64,000 nt of DNA from Tubulanus polymorphus (GCF_964204645.1 NC_134031.1:1612001-1676000); one strand, 5' to 3'. Counted from the stretch's first letter, positions 3,720-29,900 are shown. Program-made: numbers and translations. Notes: a model not told the origin generated them from the letters alone.

Positions 3720-5731
3720 TAAATCTGAAAATACAGAATGAGAAATAATGATTTAACACTCTTGAGTCTGTGATGTTGTCATATATCAAATCCTTACACT
3801 AAGAAAGAAATAAGAGTGTGAAATGTTTGTTTCCTTGAGTTGATGATTTGTTTTCAACATTTCAAATATATCCTCATAGTAATCTTCAAGAATATCTTTA
3901 TACCAGTATTTGAGCTGAAAATAACCATTAGTATTGATGAAACTCTAAGTCTGTGATGTGAAGATATGTAGTGAATATAGAGAATCCCCCAACTAATATA
4001 ACAAGAAAGGATTCCGAAAAGTTTCGTTTAAGTTGAAAATTTAGTGATTATGGAAAATTCTGAAAACTGAGTCAATCCTAACCGTGGTTTTTCCCCTAAA
4101 AACCAACTTATTTCTAAATTTCTCCGCAATTTAGTTAAACTCTGATGTATCGAAACTTTAATCAATCAATTGAAACTTTTCAGACTCCATCTTTCTCATT
4201 ATCATTAGTGTGGCATTCTCTATATCACTATTAGGATCTCTATATCACTATTAGGATATAGTTGTAACATACTAGCTCAAGGAAACATTTAGAACTCTTG
4301 TTTTTCATATTTAGGAAAAGTGAATCTGCTTGTTACAATTTTAGTTCTCTAAAAGCATCATATGGTGCTCGGATGTTTTTTTCTGGGGGTTTATTTCTGG
4401 GTGGCCACACGCTGTTTGTTTGCTAACTCGTATATTGAAAAACACGCTGTGATTTTGACACAGTGATAATCCATGTGTATATTGTACGTGTGTATAAACG
4501 GTACACAGAAAATCCATCAGCTATTCTTCAATTGTATAAACACAATCAATCAGCGCAAACAAAAAAATAGCCGATTCTGCCAGGTATTCAAAGGTTTAGC
4601 TAAAACTATCCATTTTAGAGGAACTGATTGAGGGGCCAACTTTGACTACCACACTAAAGCAATTTTGCATTTTGTTAAAAAGAGGCACCAACCCTAAAAC
4701 ATCAACCCTTGTTCACGGTATAAGTTATATTGATGTTTCCGTAAGAAGTTGGACTCAAATCTAGTGATCCATTTTTTCGTCATAAAATGTTTCAACTATT
4801 TTAAGGACATATAGAATTTTTTCTGCCTATTTTCAAGAAGGGCATTTCAGATTTATTTAGGCACCCTGGGTCTGCCCCTGTTTGTAATGATTTTAAGTAG
4901 CTCCTACTATTCAATGAAGATATTCAGTATACTGCTCTGTGCCACATCGCCACAAAAATATTACCCGTTTCTTATTTAGTTAAATGAGATTGTCTGCTGA
5001 AGCGGTATTTTCTCGGCTGGCGCCTGTTACGGGCGAACAAAAATTATCCAAGAAGAAAATAAAAACTGAGATGATTTTGTTAATGGAATAATATTATGAT
5101 TAGTGTAAACAGAAGCTTGCTCCAAAAAGATTGGCCTAATGACATAATAATGATGCAAGTAGTAGTCGGTATAGGCTACTGGTAATACATACACTAACAC
5201 ATTATTACTGCATATGGACATACGATATCAGCAAATTACTGTTTGTCCAGAAATCAGTTTCAAAGTTGAGAATTTTAGAATTAGTTCAATGGCTAGAATT
5301 TAATTTATATCCCAAACCGTGGTTTCAAAGTTGTAAGTTTGAGTCCTTTGAGTTTAGTTCAACTGTTAGAATCATGATATTTCAAACCCTGAACTGAGTA
5401 ACTGGGACCTGTAATTCTGTGTTCATATATCAATGGTTAGAGTACAGAGTAGCTTACTTCAAAACCGCTAATCCATAAATATGAACAGCATATCATATCA
5501 ACATATATAGGTGTATAGGTGTATATATCATTTTGTTCAAATGTTTTGATCAATAAATAGCTAGTATGAATGAGGAATGCTTATCTAATCTCCCAAACTG
5601 TCAGGACTAAGGCATGAATCAAAATCATTCCTTAAAAATGAAATGTGAGAATTCAAGTGATTTAAAGTACCATGTCACAAATATTACCTTATATTGTATA
5701 TAAAGCTGTAGAATTGAAATAGTTCACTTAC

Positions 5732-5961
5732 ACGTTTTATAGAATGTTTTATAATCCTCGGTTTCCCCACTGATAAATGCTACAATGACTTATCACCAAG
5801 TCTTCTGTTCGGTTGGCCTACTAATAAATGATAACTGTGATTACCTAAACCGAATGGCCTCTCCTCCTCGTCGTCAGTCGGTCGGTCGGCTGTTATCAAC
5901 CAATAGAATGATTGCTGCTAGGAAAATGTAACCTATCAGCACCTACAAACCTACTTATATA
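5732..5961 (-). promoter_or_regulatory. Putative TATA box and non-coding first exon of the FReD gene
   Basis: Minus-strand CTATATAAG near 5954-5962 and a strong donor CGT|GTAAGT at 5732/5731; an acceptor lies just upstream of the ATG at about 3724. Confidence 0.35.
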
Positions 5962-17918: not shown

Positions 17919-19221
17919 TCACGACTGTATAAATCGAATCCCGGTTTCGCAGATTGTGAATTTTCTCCCACACGTTTTTGAAACGCAGCAAAACGACTGA
18001 TCTTCGGAAGAATGTTCAAATCGAATTCGATCAGTAACGAATCTCGTCCACGCGTCGCACATATAATCCCACTCTACGCCGGTCTGATGTCGCTCTACGC
18101 CGGTCTGCTGTCGATTCGACGTTTCTTTCGTCGCTCGGTTTTGAAAAATTAAAGTTTTCGTCGCGAGCACCGTCAGGTTATACGATTCGACTAATCTCCG
18201 TAAAATATTCACGATTCTGCGCGTGTTAGCTTCCTGTACGGCGCGACAATCGCCGCCGTTCGAGCGATCTAGCCAATAGAACGCTCCGATACTGTCGACA
18301 AAAATACCGGCTATTTCCGGTCGACTGGAGATGAAAGATTCGATCGAAAGCAACGTTATCAATAATTGGCTGCTGTTCGCGCAGCGTAAAATATGTATAT
18401 TTTTCAGTGCGTTTTTAACGAAATTTTCCGTTTCCTCTTCGGAGAATTTTCGGCCGTCGCCGCTCGACGAAACTCGTTCGTTCACGAATGTCTCGATTAA
18501 CGTCGCGAGTTTTAAAATCGAAAATTGATAATCGGTATCGATGAAAACCAGTTCTACGCCGAGTCCGTATAGAGGAACACCGTTCCATTGTTCGGGTAAG
18601 ATTGCGCGCGTTATCAGATGTAAAAGCGTTAATGTTTTCGCGGTGCCCGCGTCTCCGGTCAGTTCGTACACGCAACCGGCCTCCGGACCACTTTCTCCAA
18701 ACAGATCGACGTGTAAACCTTTCAACGTCGATCGAGTCCCGAGCCTTGAAAAAAACTAAAACGAAAGAAGTTGAAATGGAAGAAGAATCGCACATCCAAT
18801 AGACAGAGGAATCACTCCATTGTCATAAACAGTACAGTGACAGCCAGGGCAGATCCAGCCGGTCAATTTGACTATATTCCTAGAAATTACTGCAGCTATG
18901 ATCTGCCAACGGCTACCAAGTATAGGTAGCAAGCATTGTACGTGTGAAGCTCATTAAAAGGGGGTTTGGGGTCCCCCCCCCAGGTCAGGAAACTTTTAAA
19001 AAATAACTTGTTTTCCAGAGAATACAGTACACAGTACAGTGGTCAGTGGAATTGGAATATAGCTTGTTGAATATAGCTTCCGTCCCTGCAGAAGAGAGTG
19101 AAACGGTGAATCCTGTCAAATTTAGAGTGGCTTTTCATTCTTTTTGATTCGTTCGAGGTAAAAACTGATCTGGAATTCGATTAACGTTACAATCAATGAT
19201 TACCTGAATTCCAGATTCCAT
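17919..19221 (-). CDS. XRCC2: DNA repair protein XRCC2 (RAD51 paralogue), 2 exons, 284 aa
   Basis: Exon 1 19221-19204 (MESGIQ|GT) joins exon 2 18755-17919 (FFSRLGTRSTLK...). Motifs: ELTGDAGTAKT (Walker A region), LPEQWNG..LYGLGVELVFIDTDYQF, VDSIGAFYWLDRSNGG. Confidence 0.93.
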
Positions 19222-20160
19222 TCTCGCTAAAATGAGTTTCAAGTTTATAACCTCGCTGTCAAATAATTTGCGGCTCAACGACCTTCAATTTGATTGATTT
19301 AGATTTCTAAACTCAAAAAACTCGATTTATTGAGGGCAGGTTCCTGCCCTGAGAAGCAAGGTGGCCTCTCAGGGCAGGTTCTGGAAAATCTGCAGAATGA
19401 CTCATATCAGATGAGCTTAGATAATCCTGGTTGCACCGCCTGTTTTTGAATAATACATTCAGAAAGCACTACGATATGTTCTTTGTATTCTCATCGGCTA
19501 TCATGTGTTCTAAATCCGCGCCTATCATGTCTTCTAATCGCCTATCATCGGTTCAGTCATAACGATTTCCATTTTAGCGAATCAACCTGTCACCTGAGGT
19601 CCCATCATGTCAGGTCAGGTCTTGGGCCCTGACATGACAGGTTCTGGAAACTCTGCAGACAGACCTAAATTCACTACTGCCGCCGAAACAGGTTAAACTG
19701 CAGCTATGCAGCATGTCCCGTGAGAGGACCTGGGGCCTGTGACGGGACAAGGATGTCCCGTCACAGGTCCCGATGGAAAATGAAAACTTTGCATTTCGTA
19801 GACGAAATGTCGAAAGAAACTGCACTGGAATGGTTACTATATACACTCAAAATAATGTTAAGAACATGTTAATAATCGAAATTTGTTCGTAATTTTATTA
19901 TTTCAGATCAATGATATCATCAAATCGAAACATTAAATGTAATAATGAAGATCGGATCAAGAGAAGACAGAACCACAGCTATCGAAATTTCAATTTTTAG
20001 TGTATAGACTGACTCATACTATCGAAAATAAAGTGAATGTATCTTGACAATTTTGGTGCCAATGGTGTTAGTAACCGTTTGTTAAGCGTTACACTGCAAA
20101 CAAAAGTAAAAGTGGAGGGGGCAACTTAATGGCCCTAGATCACTCTCGAGAGAGAATTCA

Positions 20161-20946
20161 AAGTGAGGGACCCGATTCAACACACTGTCCCGTGAGAAGA
20201 CCCGATTCAACTTACTGTCCCGTGAGAGGACCCGATTTCAAATACTGTCCCGTGAGAGGGCCCGATTTTAAATAATGTCCCGTGAGAGGACCCGATTCAA
20301 CACACTGTCCCGTGAGAGGGTCCGGTTTTAAATACTGTCCCGTGAGATGACCCGAATCAACTTGCTGTCCCGTGAGAGGACCCGGTTCAACACACTGTCC
20401 CGTGAGAGGGCCCGATTTTAAATAATGTCCCGTGAGAGGACCCGATTCAACACACTGTCACGTGAGAGGACCCGATTTTAAATACTGTCCCGTTAGAGGA
20501 CCCGGTTCAACACACTCTCCCGTGAGAGGACCTTATTTTAAATACTGTCCCGCGAAGGAACCCGATTTTAAATACTGTCCCGCGAGAGGGCCCGATTCAA
20601 CACACTGTCCCGTGAGAGGACCCGGTTTCAAATAATGTCCCGCGAGAGGGCCCGTATCAACACACTGTCCCGTGAGAGGACCCGATTTTAAATACTGTCC
20701 CGTGAGAAGACCCGAATCAACTTGCTGTCCCGTGAGAGGGCCCGGTTTCAAATAATGTCCCGTGAGAGGGCCCGATTCAACACACTGTCCCGTGAGAGGA
20801 CCCGATTTCTAATACTGTCCCGTGAGAGGACCCGAATCAACTTGCTGTCCCATGAGAGGACCCGGTTTCAAATAATGTCCCATGAGAGGACCCGATTCAA
20901 CACACTGTCCCGTGAGAGGACCCGATTCAACGCACTGTCCCGTGAG
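20161..20946 (+). repeat. Left subterminal array of 30-bp variant repeats, about 26 units
   Basis: Near-constant TGTCCCGTGAGAGG(A/G)CCC plus a 12-13 bp variable part (GATTCAACACAC, GATTTTAAATAC, GGTTTCAAATAA, GAATCAACTTGC). Confidence 0.95.
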
Positions 20947-21021
20947 CCAAACGTTGTTGAATGAGTATCTTTATGACAAATAGTGAATATTGGTGGAATA
21001 TTTCTCTATTTTGATTTATAG

Positions 21022-23355
21022 GTATCCGGCGAACGACAGGACCAAGACGACGACGTGGGCGATGATATTTCAAACGTGAGCCAAAAGTTGTTGCATGAAA
21101 ACTTCAATGTACAATATGAAAAAATGATCAAATATTGAAAAAAAATATATTTTACTGTATGAAATTACAGGTGTCCGCAGAAGACGGCTGGCTTAGATTG
21201 TATGACGACGTCTTTGACATACAAAATCTCACCGAGGCAGAACAGATTAAAATCAGTATGGAGTTATCACTCAAAGAGTCACATCTCCGTCAGAGTGCAG
21301 AGAAAAGGCTTCAATCTCTAGTTTCCGAATCCAATCTGAATATTGTGTCGGTCGCGGATGACGGAAGCTGCTTTTTTTGCAGCTGTTGTCGAACAATTGA
21401 GGCGAGAAAACGTTGACATAACAGCACATGAGCTACGATTAATGGCTGTTTCATACCTTTCTGAAAATAGGTATTGCGCTGTAAGTAAATTAAAAACCCA
21501 TTGATATATCAAGACAGCACTACAATAAATATTATATACACATATTATGGTTTGCTTCGCTGGATGGGGCTGATAAGGCCGACTTTCTGGAGTCTCATCT
21601 GACATGGCCATTATATCTTAATAAAATGAGACAAAGAACCACCTGGGCCGATGCTTTAGTTGTCCGTGCCACAGCTGACTGTTAAGGGAGACCAATGGTA
21701 CTATATACCAGTTCAGAGCAGTCAAACATCAATATGATAGATCCTGTCGAATGTAAAAATGCTGAACCCATCTTACTAGGGCATATTCAAGATATTCACT
21801 ACGTTGCCCTAGTAAAAAGGAGCTATATCCCAAGACGACGCGTGTCAGTCGAGAGTGTCAGAGGGTAACCTTGCGGCCTAACCCACGGAAGACGGTAAGT
21901 TGATAGTATATGCCACCCCTTCTGACTATTTGGCAAAAATAATACAGCCATCAGAAGCCTTGTTCATGTCAGCTAAGGGTTAATTAATTGAATTTCATAG
22001 CGTCAAAGTGACAGTTACCTCTGAGAACCGCAGAAAAAAAGAAGACGGGTTGTCGATAAAGGAATCTACTGCGTTTGCAAGAAACCAGATGATGGAAGGT
22101 AAAGCTTAATTATATCATATAAGATCAGGCTGTTGTTTTAAGATTCAGTCGTCATTGTCGAAAAAATCTTTTACCTTCACTTTCACTTTCACTTACCTTC
22201 ACTTTCAAAATTTTCTGCATTTGCATTTTAGGAAGTATTTGCAATGCGATGAATGTAGTGGGTGGTTCCATCCGAAATGTATTGGTCTGAACGAAGATAC
22301 TGTGGAGAAAATTGACTATAGATGCGAAACGTGTTTTGCAGGTAAGCGATGAACTAAAAAAATATTTTGATCAAATAAGCTATGCCAATATCCTTGCTAT
22401 GCTATCCTTTTATACAATGTGATTGCATTCTTTTTATATAGGTACCTAAACGATTCATTAAGAGTCAGGTATGGAATCCGATACATAATGCATACGAAAC
22501 TCTTGCCATTTTCCACTAGAAAGCAATGAATCAAATGTTTTTCTTTTCGCAGCTTGGCGCGGTTGAATATCACGTTTCTCGTATAATTAATGCCGAGATA
22601 AAAGACAAGAGGTAAATATTGTACCTTAGTAGAAATCTCGCCAGTTTGTTGAATTTTTCAAACTTTTGTTGATAATATACAATCTTTGGTTTCAGAAGGC
22701 CGGAATTCAGGAGACATTTGGACTTGATTAACAAAGACCATGAAAGAGCCGAAAAAGAACTGAAAGGATATGGCTATGGGCTTTTAACTGATGAGGTAAG
22801 CATTGATAACAGAAAATATGAAATGCGTACAAATAAATGAGCTTTCTTTCGATCATCGTAATATTCAATATTTTAAAGGGCCATGCATATCTCTATAGTG
22901 TAATGAAATCATACGTCAGCCCTACCTTTGCGGACAAATCGTAAGTATATACATGAATCAGACGTGAAGTTTTTTTACTATATTTCGAAATGATAATCAA
23001 TTCATTTCAATTACAGGAAACCATATTCAACTCGCTACATGACCCTCCGACAACATCATTCTAAAATGCTGAATTCAGTTTTTAAAGAAGGAAAGACGTA
23101 AGTTCATTCTCATCTTCTATTGCTAATTTCTTAAAAGAATTTCATCCATGTTATATTCATTGTATTAAAATATTTTTCAGGTCAGCAGTAACGTATGTTA
23201 ATGACGTTTTGCTTAAAGAGGCCATTTGTTTATTGGTGTCAACCTACCGAAATATCACATACAACGAGGCTGATATTCTTGGAAGAAGAACAGAGGCCAA
23301 AAAACTAAAAGATGTACAACGACTAATGTCCAAATACTTCTTGCCAGATTATTGA
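21022..23355 (+). pseudogene. 5'-truncated, disrupted transposon gene: UIM-like motif + OTU cysteine peptidase + NLS + PHD finger + PWWP3A/MUM1-C-like domain
   Basis: Exons about 21022-21075, 21171-21480, 21560-21894, 22001-22098, 22232-22341, 22442-22468, 22553-22611, 22696-22795, 22879-22940, 23017-23097 and 23181-23355. OTU: VADDGSCFF/AAVVEQL..HELRLMAVSYL..WADALVVRATAD..LGHIQDIHY. PHD: YCVCKKPDDGRKYLQCDECSGWFHPKCIG..YRCETC. Lesions: extra T in 21372-21378, lost acceptor near 21559, TAA at 21683-21685, TGA at 22022-22024, extra T near 22335. Confidence 0.85.
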
Positions 23356-24281
23356 AGAGTGAAGCAGTTTTCGATTCTTAAATGGGAGCTGTTGTAGATT
23401 GGTTATCCCGTAATGATTGTATTCTATGGAATAAGTTTTCTTGTTGCGATGAATTTTTGGATTGCTAGAGATGGTCTTTGCTGAATTTTGGTAATGGTTT
23501 TAATAGGAACCAGATTGTGACATGGATGTTTGAATTGTTGAAATGCTGTCCAGTCTTCTAATAGATGTGTGTAGTATATAGCCTATAGAAGTTCTTTGCA
23601 ATGATGTTTCAGAAGTTATGAATGATGGTTGAAAGATTCCAGCCGGGGCCGAGATGGTATTGTAAATTGTTGTTAATTAGTGGATCGTTTTATCTGCCTG
23701 GTTTGTTGTCGATGTCTTATGCTGTGTACTACTTCGTGTTAAATATTATTTTTGTATTGTGTCTTAACAGACAAGGGCGTTTTCTGTCATCCAATATGAA
23801 ATGATAATTTTTGGTTCAAATTATAATACATCTATCCGGAATTGGGAAATATTGCTGAAGAGTAAAAGGGGAAATATGAAAGAATTGATGATAACCTTTT
23901 TTACCGTGTAAAGTAATAATTAATAATTAAATGATAAGTAATAATTTAGTTTGGCGACAAAGATTTAGTAATCTAAAATGCTAAATTGATTTCGAATTCC
24001 AACGTATGTTGTTTATGTTCAAATATGAATAATATAGTCTTCGAATGTAATATGGTTTACAGATTTTGATAAATAAATAACTGAACATAATTTCACATAT
24101 ATACGATTTGTTTTATGTTTTAAGGGGACATAGCCAATTTGGCTTTTAGTACGTACATCCAGCCATCATTGTACGCATATTGTTGAAATAATAATTTCTT
24201 GTTGTAATTTTTATATATGGCAAAAATGCATTATCATTATGAGCATGGGACTCAACATTGACAAAGTGGACAATTTCATTA

Positions 24282-26050
24282 GTCCTCTCACGGGACAGTG
24301 TGTTGAACCGAGTCCTCTCACGTGACATTCTTTGAAACCAGGTCCTCTCACGGAACAGTAAGTTGATTCGGGTCCTCTCACGGGACAGTGTGTTGAATCG
24401 GGTCCTCTCACGGGACAGTATGTTGAATCGGGTCCTCTCACGGGACATTATTTAAAAGCGGGCCCTCTCACGGGACAGTGTGTTGAATCGGGTCCTCTCA
24501 CGGGACAGAGTGTTGAATCGGGCCCTCTCACGTGACATTATTTGAAACCAGGTCCTCTCACGGGACAGTGTGTTGAACCGAGTCCTCTCACGTGACATTC
24601 TTTGAAACCAGGTCCTCTCACGGGACAGTAAGTTGATTCGGGTCCTCTCACGGGACAGTGTGTTGAATCGGGTCCTCTCACGGGACAGTATGTTGAATCG
24701 GGTCCTCTCACGGGACAGTATTTAAAATAGGGTCCACTTACGGGACAGTGTGTTGAATCGGGTCCTCTCACGGGACAGTGTGTTGAACCGGGTCCTCTCA
24801 CGGGACAGTATTTAAAATCGGGTTCCTTCGCGGGACAGTATTTAAAATAGGGTCCTCTCACGGGACAGTGTGTTGATTCGGGTCCTCTCACGGGACAGTG
24901 TGTTGAATCGGGTCCTCTCACGGGACAGTATTTAAAATAGGGTCCTCTAACGGGACAGTATTTAAAATCGGGTCCTCTCACGGGACAGTGTGTTGAACCG
25001 GGTCCTCTCATGTGACATTATTTGAAACCAGGTCCTCTCACGGAACAGTAAGTTGATCCGGGTCCTCTCACGGGACATTATTTGAAACCAGGTCCTCTCA
25101 CGGGACAGTGTGTTGAATCGGGTCCTCTCACGGGACAGTATTTAAAATCGGGTTCCTTCGCGGGACAGTATTTAAAATAGGGTCCTCTCGCGGGACAGTG
25201 TGTTGAATCGGGTCCTCTCACGGGACAGTATTTAAAATCGGGTTCCTTCGCGGGACAGTATTTAAAATAGGGTCCTCTCACGGGACAGTGTGTTGAACCG
25301 GGTCCTCTCACGGGACAGTATTTAAAATCGGGTCCTCTCACGGGACAGTATTTAAAATAGGGTCCTCTCACGGGACAGTGTGTTGAATCGGGTCCTCTCA
25401 CGGGACAGTATTTAAAATAGGGTCCTCTAACGAGACAGTATTCAAAATCGGGTCCTCTCACGGGACAGTGTGTTGAATCGGGCCCTCTCACGTGACATTA
25501 TTTGAAACCAGGTCCTCTCACGGGACAGTAAGTTGATTCGGGTCCTCTCACGGGACAGTGTGTTGAATCGGGTCCTCTCACGGGACAGTATTTAAAATCG
25601 GGTTCCTTCGCGGGACAGTATTTAAAATAGGGCCCTCTCACGGACAGTGTGTTGAATCGGGTCCTCTCACGGGACAGTATTTAAAATCGGGTTCCTTCGC
25701 GGGACAGTATTTAAAATAGGGTCCTCTCACGGGACAGTGTGTTGAATCGGGTCCTCTCACGGACAGTATTTAAAATCGGGTTCCTTCGCGGGACAGTATT
25801 TAAAATAGGGTCCTCTCACGGGACAGTGTGTTGAATCGGGTCCTCTCACGGGACAGTATTTAAAATCGGGTTCCTTCGCGGGACAGTATTTAAAATAGGG
25901 TCCTCTAACGGGGCAGTATTCAAAATCGGGTCCTCTCACGGAACAGTGTGTTTAATCGGGTCCTCTCACGGGACAGTATTTAAAATCGGGTCCTCTCACG
26001 GGACATTGTGTTGAATCGGGACCTCTCACGGGACGGTAACTTGAATCGCG
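24282..26050 (-). repeat. Right subterminal array of the same 30-bp variant repeats, inverted, about 59 units
   Basis: GGGTCCTCTCACGGGACA plus a variable 12-mer; reverse complement of the left array. Confidence 0.95.
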
Positions 26051-26795
26051 GGTTCCCGGCCGTTGTAAAATCCTGCGTGAAAAACGTGCATTCATATCCC
26101 CTATTGTCCCCCTGGCCCTGCAGTAAATTAGAATTTTTCGGTAGGCCCTTATGTATTTATAAATGAAATCAAAATGGAAAATGTAATAATTACAATCGAT
26201 AGTTGAATTTATTTATTCATAATCGTTATAGGCAGAATACATAAGAATATATAAGGGACTCGAAACCGCTAGCATTGGAATCGACGTTTCATGTAAGAAT
26301 TCTACATTTGTCCCGTGAGAGGACCCATGTCCCGTCACAGGCCCGGGTCCTCTCACGGGACGCTGCAGTTTAACTCATATGCTGCCGCCTCGACGTCCAC
26401 ACCGGTACGAAGTTGCAGCTCTGTGCAGTGAGATTGATAATCCTCGTCCAGAGTAAGTGAAATTTGAGAGAACAACTTCAACAACACTAGAGTCTTTTCG
26501 ACTTAACTCGCTTCCAGACCTAATCCTTTTTCACTCGCTGTGTTACACTTACACAGTTAGTTACAGCTACTTTCTTTTTTCTAACCGAACGCCGCAGGAC
26601 TGCTGTGGGCCTGGCCCCTCCTCGGGCCTGCCTGCCTCATCCTCACTTGCCAGCTCTTAGTACACGCAGTATATACAGAGCGCCGTGGTGAACACACCAT
26701 CTTATCCCAGCTACCGAGGCCGCGTACCTTAATTAAACTGCCCAGGATTGTTTAAGACGGCCCCAGGCAGTCTAATCTAGCCAATCAGGGTGTTT

Positions 26796-26935
26796 AGATC
26801 AGAGCCAGGGTTGTGTGGATCAGAGCCAGGGACTGCCGGGGTATGTGGATCAGAGCCAGGGACTGCCGGGGTATGTGGATCAGAGCCAAGGACTGCCGGG
26901 GTATGTGGATCAGAGCCAAGGACTGCTGCGGTGTG
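26796..26935 (+). repeat. 30-bp minisatellite, about 4.5 copies, in the first intron of the RRM gene
   Basis: GATCAGAGCCAGGGACTGCCGGGGTATGTG repeated; unrelated in sequence to the transposon arrays. Confidence 0.85.
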
Positions 26936-26973
26936 ATTTTACATTCATATTTTGTTTGTTAATTTATTTTCAG

Positions 26974-29900
26974 ATGACCCTTGTATTGAATAATGATCAT
27001 TACGGTTGGGCGTACGAGGCGCCCCCTGTCGAGGAAGGCGCTACCCCGTGTTCTCTATGCTACGGTCGTGGAATATCGAAGTTACCGGATCTGACGAGTC
27101 TTCGCCCTCCCAGAGCAATGACTGTACGTACCTATACTACCTAAAGCATTTATCTCAACCGAGAGAGATTTTGTTTAGAAATACTAATTGAGGCGATTGT
27201 TTTTTGCAGCCCGGTCAATCACCGAGTTTAGGTAAGAAACCGAGTCGAGGACGAGGTCGAGCGAAGATTTTAGCCGATGTTGTCCACTCTGTTCAGTCAA
27301 CAGTAAGTAAAAACAAACAATCCCTCTTTACATTTTATAATTGTCCGGAATCAGTTGCGCTGTTTTCCTGTTAAGACTCGATGATTTATACGTATTGGAA
27401 GTGAATGAATTTTTACTCCACTGTCGTCAAACTGAACTGAAAGTTTTCTCTGATTGATCAGATCCCAGATAAGCGCAGTCTTGTGTATTCAATACCCTTT
27501 AAGTATGTGCTGCTAATTCTTTAACCCCTAAACTGTCTCAAATTCCTGAGCTAACTCACTGAGGCCAACTTTAACTCTCCTGTTTAAGATTTCACAATTA
27601 TAGACCTGTTCTACTGGTGTTTCCAATGACTTAATTTGTTACTATAATGGAACCTTGTGGGAAAAAGTGAAATTACTGAATTTAACGGGTATGAGCCAAG
27701 AGAGAACGGCTATCTGTGTAGCCTATCCGCCCCCAGGTCACCATTGACCCCCAAAATTATCTAAAAAATCAGAAACGTATTTCATTGAACACAAAACAAC
27801 ATAATGATTAATTTCAAGCATAAGACCTTGTTTTAGAAGAAAGTGCAACTTCACTAAATTTAATTGGGGGAGCCACTTAGACCTCATTAATTCATCCGTT
27901 AAATGGTTTAAAGGGACTCGCATTAAGATGTGTATTTTGTTAAAGTTGTTAAAAGGTAAAAGAAAAATCATTGACATTTTTTCGCAGAGTAACAAATCTT
28001 TGTCGCGCGGCAGTTCCTGTTCGAGTCTCAATCGCCAACAAATAACAGCTAACAGCACCGGTACTGCAGGTGCCGGCGCTGGCGGTTTTGGAAATAACAC
28101 GGGATTCACCTCGAAAAATGTGGACGTCAAAAAAGACGAACGAAATTCGTCGCAGTCGCCGAATTCACGTCTTCTTCAAGAAAAAGACTTCGCCGATCAG
28201 TTCGAAGATGCAGTTAACGATGAAACTGTTGACAAGAACTTTCTAGTCAAATCTGATGAAATTCCATCCAACTCGCAGATCTGTGATAGTATTTATAGTA
28301 TTGATAGTACGGCTGCTAATTCTATGATTTATCACGCTCCGTCCTCTGATCAAACGGCGTCTGCCGATCGTCGAGTCGTCTCCTCGTCTGCTGGTTGTGA
28401 AAGAGGAGTTTACCCGAAGGCCGTTAACGGAACGAGTCTTTACGATCGATTATGTGAAGAAATTAAGAACAATAAAACGACGACGACGAAATCAAAACGC
28501 GAATCTACGAGAAGCGAAAATAAACGATCGGTGAAAAACTCCGACGTGACTTCGCTCGTCGAGCAGTTGAAACTAGCGGCAGCTGAACGAACGGAAGATG
28601 ACGAAAACGATGACGATCTTGACGACCTTCCGAAAAATGATGAAAAGTGTAGCGATTCTAGTTACGATCGTATTTTAGCCGATCGTAAAGCAACTCCGAA
28701 GTGGCGCCCGTCGAAACAATCCGACGAAATCGTCGCGATGAAAACGGACGAGATATTTTTCGGCGCGAATGAATTCGCGAACGACGACGGATTCGAGGAC
28801 GATCTTTTTTCGCGAAGTCGAAATCGTAATTTATTCTCGAATTCGGCGCCGATTAAAATCGATTGTACGAATCAGTTTCCGGATTTAGGCGCTGATCAGC
28901 GGCAGACGTATTGCGAGCAGACGGAGCCATCCTCCTCATCGGCGTCGATATGGACTCCGAAATCCGTCATCGATTGGAACGACGACATCGATATAAAATT
29001 TGTCTCGTCGAAAAAATCGTCGAAGAAAAATCGCGCCTCAGATAAAACTGAAACAACGACTCAGCAGCAGCCACAGAAGCAGCAGCAGCCGCAGCCTCTC
29101 AGAAAAACATCATCAATCGGCAAGAAGAAACTAGTCGCGATGTCACCTGCAAAAAATCTGGAGAAAAGCAATTCATCCTCGACGGGACAGCAGCAGCAGC
29201 AGCAGCAGCATCCGAAAACGTTCGCAGGTGCGGTAAAAAAAACAGACAATAGCGTCATCGTCAATAGCGATAATAGCGGTAAATCTACAAAAAAATCAGC
29301 AGCCGAACGAAATCCACGAATTCGTATCGATAATTTACCGAGAGGTTGTGAGAAGCAGACGCTTCGAGAATTCTTAGAACAATTCGGACAAATTATCGAT
29401 ATTCACATCGAGAAAAGTGGAAAGTTTGATTCGGCAATCGTTAGGTGAGTTGACTACAGTTTTACCGACAATTATTCGAATTTTAATTTTCTTGCTGCGA
29501 ACAACTTTTTGTACGTATTTCGTCGATACTTTTGATTTGTAAACTTGTAATTACAGTTTAAGTAGTAGTGAAGCTGTCGAATGGGCGTTGTCTTGTTTAC
29601 ACGATTGTGATACATTATTTCCTGGTATGTACTATTACTGTAAGGTGTCTGACCAGGGAGGGAGGTGTCTTCTCGAGTCCTACCTTCCTCGTCTAACTAT
29701 ACCAACTTTTGGTTTCGACTCATTAGTCAAAACAAGAACTGTGCAATTGAGTCCAGATTTAACTTTCAATTAAACCTCTCTAAATTCCAGACCTAGTTCT
29801 AATCTACAGTAGTAGAATAGCTACAATCAAACACGGAGAACAGATAAAACCCACTGTATATAGACTGATAAGTTTTAGAATCAAGAATTCGTTTAATCAA

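Follow-up and report, generated by a model that had tools for sequence, protein, structure and literature searches.

A probable decayed OTU-PHD cargo gene in a foldback-like non-autonomous transposon of Tubulanus polymorphus

The locus and its mobile element

The window analyzed here, i.e., the whole stretch of 64,000 nucleotides of Tubulanus polymorphus DNA, is intron-rich and has a GC content of about 38%. Positions 19685–26381 are occupied by a 6.7-kb element, whose sole coding content according to Pfam searches and frame reading is the OTU-PHD gene described below. Two divergent host genes flank the element. On one side, ORF 17922–18725 of the minus strand belongs to a Rad51 paralogue (Pfam Rad51, E 2e-8); on the other, ORF 27928–29445 of the plus strand encodes a long low-complexity protein that ends in an RRM (E 2e-4). 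After removal of the element, the intergenic region between them is approximately 2.5 kb long. This position between divergent genes agrees with the initial annotation, which placed the copy in a promoter region.

The limits of the element were set by homology to six other copies, which starts at base 19685 and stops at base 26381 with the same two terminal bases. The left terminal region (19685–20162, plus strand) begins with GAAACAGGTTAAACTGCAGC exactly where this homology begins, and is followed by a tandem array of 26 units of 30 bp (20163–20946, plus strand). An array of 59 units of the same 30-bp repeat lies at 24282–26048 on the minus strand, inverted with respect to the left one; both were detected with TRF, and together they make up about 2.5 kb of the 6.7 kb. 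The right terminal region (26049–26381, plus strand), delimited by comparison with other copies, ends with …GCTGCAGTTTAACTCATATG. The same 8-mer, CTGCCGCC, adjoins both ends as the left (19677–19684) and right (26382–26389) target site duplication. Six insertions were checked, and five of them, among these the window copy, had exact 8-bp duplications; the sequences at the other four were CCATTTTC, GGTTTTTA, AATAAAAC, and GATTGCAC. The sixth pair (C1, 5.13 Mb) was imperfect, with one or two mismatches (GTATTTTT / GAATTTTT). The duplicated sequence varied between insertions, and none was shared.

With an identity of at least 95%, searches of the 268-Mb assembly yielded left and right ends of the element, about 16 of each. 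Eight copies, the window copy and seven further ones, carry the gene and are ~99% identical; one of them is split by an insertion, and one is truncated at the 5′ end. Paired ends elsewhere belonged to gene-bearing copies, to shorter deletion derivatives, and to two copies with nested insertions. The description of the gene as transposon-borne is thus borne out by the 8-bp duplications and the nearly identical copies. ORF and Pfam analysis revealed no transposase between the arrays, and among paired ends genome-wide there was no family member with an unexplained long interior. Since none of the copies leaves space for a gene that is unaccounted for, no autonomous member was seen. No rve domain was detected in the element with Pfam; the only rve in the DNA of this family lies within a nested Polinton-like insertion of an older copy on C8. 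An Rfam scan of positions 18500–27500 gave no match.

Past the stop codon of the gene, window positions 23387–23921 were 66–68% identical to at least 15 other loci that do not contain the rest of the element. This segment seems to be a repeat in its own right, older than the element and lodged in its 3′ part.

Gene model and domain content

The gene model was obtained by three-frame reading with canonical GT/AG sites, and the exons were searched singly by profile. All features of the gene are on the plus strand. Frame and splice signals delimit an acidic mini-exon, VSGERQDQDDDVGDDISN, at 21022–21075. It is part of a ~135-bp unit that is present about once in the window and two to three times in tandem in other copies, as indicated by extra upstream matches of the latter to query positions 1–154. 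The unit (window 20947–21100; intron plus exon) starts with GTGAGCC..., as does the end of the 30-bp array. The acidic N-terminal exon is likewise repeated in L046, a paralogue from another lineage of this genome.

The next exon, found by frame reading (21171–21378), contains a UIM-like motif and the OTU Cys loop DDGSCFF (21357–21377) and ends in a run of seven T (21372–21378), which shifts the frame and is present in young copies covering the site. The OTU sequence continues in the +1 frame at 21367–21471 (AAVVEQLRRENVDITAHELRLMAVSYLSENR) up to a GT donor; this stretch aligns to DGACLFRAVADQV of OTUD5 and, compared via the older copy, is 52% identical to the paralogue. The middle part of the domain (21554–21682, …FLESHLTWPLYLNKMRQRTTWADALVVRATADC) was placed by alignment to OTUD5 and comparison with the paralogue. 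It is followed by an in-frame TAA stop (21683–21685), common to young copies; the older C8 copy has a Leu codon here. The end of the domain (21686–21865), recognized by comparison with the paralogue and the C8 copy, includes the His loop LGHIQDIHY (21776–21802). Inside it lies a 2-nt indel (21855–21856) that puts the sequence out of frame ahead of the donor near 21895; no such break occurs in the C8 copy or the paralogue.

The basic patch KKRRR (22034–22048) and the first half of a PHD finger, IYCVCKKPDDGR, are encoded by the exon 22025–22099. This half aligns to the N-terminal halves of the Spp1 and BPTF PHD fingers and is conserved in the paralogue as GIYCVYRKPDDGR. The second half, KYLQCDECSGWFHPKCIGLNEDTVEKIDYRCETC, occupies 22233–22343 and was identified by Pfam and its PDB neighbors. 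The C-terminal region (22442–23355) of ~167 amino acids is composed of six short exons, 22442–22468, 22553–22612, 22697–22795, 22879–22941, 23018–23098, and 23182–23352, with the stop codon at 23353–23355, and is 43–56% conserved in other lineages. The last exon alone matched Pfam PWP3A-B_C (PF20886) with E 0.037 and 14.4 bits (cutoff 27). In this comparison by single exons, the score for a PWWP3A/B C-terminal domain thus stayed below the gathering score. Three other C-terminal exons (22553–22612, 22697–22795, and 22879–22941), searched singly, gave no Pfam match, and the ESM Atlas returned nothing usable for the last exon.

The four OTU pieces of the window, being too short, had no individual Pfam match. 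The same stretch from the older C8 copy (L038) scored against Pfam OTU (PF02338) with E 4.8e-4 and 21.1 bits, slightly short of the cutoff of 23.3, and the paralogue passed the threshold with E 1.9e-8 and 35.3 bits. In BLASTP, the family and the paralogue were 43–52% identical (5e-34 and 8e-16). The nearest solved structure to a profile of the OTU pieces was OTUD5 (E 0.004) with the catalytic loops aligned: D-G-x-C of the Cys loop and H-Y of the His loop are both present and correspond to DGACLF and NIHY of OTUD5. The predicted OTU domain therefore holds via the paralogue and the older read-through copy, and both loops named in the initial annotation were located. Its repair of the frameshift was also correct: the C8 copy has six T vs. 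seven in the window and reads ...SCFFAAVVEQL... in one open frame. Another open frame of this copy runs through ...ATADCLGRPMVLY...GHIQDIHY.... The TAA stop, the 2-nt indel at 21855–21856, and an extra G of the window at 22338 were absent from that annotation.

In OTU proteases, the residue at His+2 is usually Asp or Asn, and some OTUs supply it from elsewhere. The window family (HYVAL) and the paralogue (HYVGL) have Val at this position, and no acidic or amide third catalytic residue is found just after the His. This lowers the confidence in deubiquitinase (DUB) activity, although it does not exclude it. Searches of the ESM Atlas with the paralogue produced only generic OTU clusters (0.84–0.89), which serve as leads only. 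An AlphaFold2 model of the paralogue ORF from a 7-row alignment had a mean pLDDT of 36.7 and was unusable.

The exon with the second PHD half passed the Pfam threshold alone (PF00628, E 1.3e-8, 35.2 bits, cutoff 24). The C4HC3 ligand set is complete and distributed over two exons, with C-x-C in 22025–22099 and C-x2-C, H-x2-C, and C-x2-C in 22233–22343. The nearest solved structures to the second half were KDM5B PHD3, SHL, BPTF, PHF2, EBS, PHF8, KDM5A PHD3, Set3, CXXC1, and TAF3, and those aligning to the first half were Spp1 and BPTF. KDM5B PHD3, SHL, BPTF, PHF2, PHF8, and Spp1 are known H3K4me3 readers. At the positions of BPTF Y10, Y17, Y23, and W32, which form the trimethyl-lysine cage, the alignments show Y, D, Y, and W in the window, with aromatic residues at three positions (Y10, Y23, and W32) and D in place of Y17. 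By homology, the assignment to the H3K4me3-reader type is a fair call.

KKRRR, present as annotated, is a plain basic patch for which no score is possible. The UIM-like motif TEAEQIKISMELSLKES is located at 21231–21281 and has Ser in place of the conserved Ala. Of the Pfam models tested (PF23625/PF02809), UIM_2 gave E 0.17 and 12.6 bits (cutoff 21), which is no more than chance allows, and neither the paralogue nor the older copy on C8 yielded such a motif with Pfam. The motif is therefore in place as a sequence and is not significant as a UIM. Profile searches of the kind proposed in the initial annotation thus recovered the PHD finger in the window and the OTU domain in the paralogue, with no match for the OTU pieces of the window or for the UIM. 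The claim that the ancestral protein joined an OTU domain to a PHD finger is borne out by Pfam and the paralogue. From homology only, this protein is predicted to have entered the nucleus, acted as a deubiquitinase, and bound histones.

Lesions and state of the gene

The extra T of the T-run, the TAA stop, and the 2-nt indel are shared by all young copies covering the respective site, and the frame is broken at 21372–21378, 21683–21685, and 21855–21856. In addition, the window alone has the extra G (a 1-nt insertion) at 22338, which alters the splice phase at the donor of the PHD exon. A homopolymer assembly error could account for the T-run lesion taken by itself, but for neither the TAA nor the 2-nt indel.

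The older C8 copy is 94–97% identical and reads through all three shared lesions. It is itself not intact: 3 nt are lost in the Cys loop, a 29-nt deletion covers a splice donor, and an insertion exceeding 10 kb is nested in the PHD exon. Recovery of intact copies, as suggested in the initial annotation, was therefore unsuccessful both among the young copies and with this older one. The segment L038:6300-10000 (G000:C8:7480300-7484000) belongs to the large AT-rich insertion that splits the PHD exon. Coding sequence was found in it for an rve integrase bearing a chromodomain (E 2.6e-9 and 1.3e-4) as well as for a packaging ATPase of the Pox_A32 type (E 8e-13), and for this reason the insertion looks Polinton/Maverick-like.

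The canonical frame of the gene would yield at most a short N-terminal peptide with neither OTU nor PHD. Since all young copies covering the sites have the three lesions, the gene was dead in the master copy before the current burst, and the last burst consequently did not need the OTU-PHD protein in cis. Judging by its sequence, the window copy is a relic, not a working chromatin or ubiquitin tool.

Because the OTU region was broken before the burst, young insertion sites cannot reflect the protein acting in cis. In a crude and uninformative control, an ORF facing the element within 1 kb was found at four of six insertions vs. 57% of the background (P 0.49; ORFs were listed from 90 amino acids at insertions and from 100 in the background, which consisted of random window positions). 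Targeting of promoters by the PHD finger, as previously proposed, is unsupported: the protein was dead during the burst, there is no transposase for the PHD to guide, and the control gave no enrichment.

Relatives, origin, and comparison with known systems

Further lineages were found by exon-wise protein search of the genome; the loci on C11, C1, and C4/C6 are known from match tables. The layout of OTU, PHD, and C-terminal region recurs in at least two more lineages of this genome. Lineage B comprises two decayed C4 copies, 94% identical to each other. Lineage C is a single locus, C11:10329691-10331866 (minus strand), in which the Cys-loop, His-loop, PHD, and middle and last C-terminal exons occur in order; all five tested exons matched at 43–62% identity, with no stops within the matches. 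This locus may be an intact relative or a domesticated gene. Lineage D is a decayed OTU-PHD remnant on C1, lineage E includes a PHD and a weak C-terminal pair on C4 and C6, and the five copies of group F have only the last exon in common. The lineage-B paralogue L046 has direct repeats of several hundred bases at 846–1209 and 5357–5761, 88–95% identical. These repeats, 4.5 kb apart, flank it in place of 30-bp arrays, a context different from that of the inverted arrays in the window. Word-index protein searches with the 330-aa paralogue ORF and a 135-aa piece of the older copy revealed no relatives outside this genome, and a metagenome scan with a single protein gave none either.

Taken together, 21171–23355 is probably a cargo gene of several exons, now decayed, carried by a foldback-like transposon of the cut-and-paste type that is non-autonomous. 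The gene would have been dead before the burst and would ancestrally have coded for an OTU-PHD protein. From the N-terminus, this protein would have had an acidic region, possibly a UIM-like helix, the OTU cysteine protease, the basic patch, the PHD finger, and a C-terminal region of ~170 amino acids. It may have entered the nucleus by means of the basic patch and docked through its PHD of the H3K4me3-reader type on active chromatin methylated at H3K4, where the OTU domain would have cleared neighboring substrates of ubiquitin or a ubiquitin-like modifier. By analogy, such a role would match that proposed for the OTU, Ulp1, and VTD domains of Ginger1 and Helitrons. For its mobility, the element itself would have to rely on a transposase that is encoded at another locus and acts in trans; this enzyme presumably recognizes the termini and the 30-bp repeats. 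As to its origin, the gene could be a long-standing accessory gene of the transposon or could have been captured from the host long ago.

In its strict form, host capture means that a cellular OTU-PHD gene, perhaps that of the C11 locus, became a passive cargo which never served transposition. The absence of a transposase from the element, whose mobility was not stopped by decay of the cargo, is in line with this, as are the C11 locus with its five exons in the same order and the different repeat context of the paralogue. However, protein identity to every other lineage is 41–62%, so that there was no recent donor. The decayed and dispersed state of lineages B (C4) and D (C1) fits genes of selfish elements better, and among annotated host proteins none with an OTU-PHD architecture turned up in a word search. 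We therefore regard passive capture as rather unlikely, at a distance the second choice after a decayed cargo gene of OTU-PHD ancestry.

A bolder proposal, which we consider improbable, is a lineage-specific chromatin-tethered DUB spread by transposons. Its intact form, possibly at C11, would read H3K4me3 and strip ubiquitin at active promoters, shielding transposition intermediates or countering silencing by the host, or would by now have been domesticated by the worm. If true, this would be the first fusion of a histone-mark reader and a DUB arising from a DNA transposon.

It is highly improbable that young copies still make a functional protein, whether by alternative splicing, by read-through of the stop, or by transcriptional slippage on the T-run, and that the module is active today. 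The seven-T run is indeed slippage-prone, and most copies have open reading frames in the exons of the PHD and the C-terminal region. Nevertheless, three independent bypasses would be needed (of the +1 shift, the TAA, and the 2-nt indel), substitutions that distinguish the young copies occur in introns as well as in exons, with no concentration in either, and the window has a fourth lesion. Chance matches in transposon DNA that was never a gene, a reading in line with the sub-threshold Pfam scores of the UIM-like motif and of the window OTU pieces taken alone, are refuted by the PHD score above threshold, the exon-wise protein conservation of 43–62% across lineages with canonical splice sites, and the OTU score of the paralogue.

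Transposon-borne OTU, Ulp1, and PHD domains are already known from Ginger1 and Helitrons. The transposases of Ginger1, animal cut-and-paste elements, include OTU, or Ulp1 with a PHD (Ginger1-9_HM), and a role of ubiquitin/SUMO hydrolysis in transposition was proposed (Bao, Kapitonov and Jurka, 2010; PMC2836005). Ginger1 proteins join the protease to a Gypsy-like integrase, and 4 bp of target, CCGG or CCGT, are duplicated on insertion (PMC2836005). The element in the window is similar in being a cut-and-paste element with an OTU-encoding protein. It differs in lacking an integrase, in its 8-bp duplication, and in combining OTU and PHD with a C-terminal region. Membership in Ginger1 was ruled out by the varied sequence of the 8-bp duplications and the absence of rve from the element.

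Helitrons and Helentrons encode OTU and VTD deubiquitinase domains, often fragmentary and seemingly dispensable for transposition; the Helitron OTU versions had not been tested biochemically as of 2022, and the function of the OTU/VTD domains is untested or proposed to be protective (PMC9741609; PMC11417382). A PHD partner of the Helitron OTU is not reported in these two papers (PMC9741609; PMC11417382). A transposon-encoded cysteine protease domain of the DUB type is the common feature. Helitrons are rolling-circle elements with RepHel and no target duplication, whereas the window element has inverted ends with arrays and an 8-bp duplication. The target duplication and the missing RepHel ruled out assignment to Helitrons. 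The ubiquitin/SUMO proteases of transposons (Ginger1, Helitron, MULE) are a recurrent puzzle, and their function has so far been a proposal. The fusion to a PHD of the H3K4me3 type suggests active chromatin as the place where such an enzyme would act. The value of the present case lies in this architecture and in the possibly intact C11 relative, not in a present-day function at the window locus.

Vertebrate RAG2, the partner of the RAG1 transposase, has a PHD that reads H3K4me3 and links recombination with active chromatin. RAG2 and the RAG2-like proteins of RAG-like (Transib-related) transposons resemble the product considered here in being transposon-associated accessory proteins with a PHD; in the window, unlike RAG2, the PHD is fused to a protease domain and has no known transposase partner. 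OTUD5/DUBA also carries a UIM, located C-terminally. The UIM-like motif of the window, in contrast, precedes the Cys loop. The Cys- and His-loop motifs align to those of OTUD5 (PDB 3pfy, 3tmo), although the overall similarity is low and His+2 is Asn in OTUD5 (HYNSV) vs. Val in the window family.

The foldback transposons FB and Galileo of Drosophila have long inverted arms of short tandem repeats, and many of their copies are devoid of transposase. Both features are shared by the element in the window. Its OTU-PHD cargo gene distinguishes it from FB and Galileo, and its 8-bp duplication and termini were matched here to no described superfamily. In both arrays, each 30-bp unit combines an invariant core, GTCCCGTGAGAGGAC, which includes a GTCC...GGAC inverted pair, with an AT-rich tail whose variation follows a super-period of 90–120 bp. 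The arrays are plausible candidates for an array of protein-binding sites.
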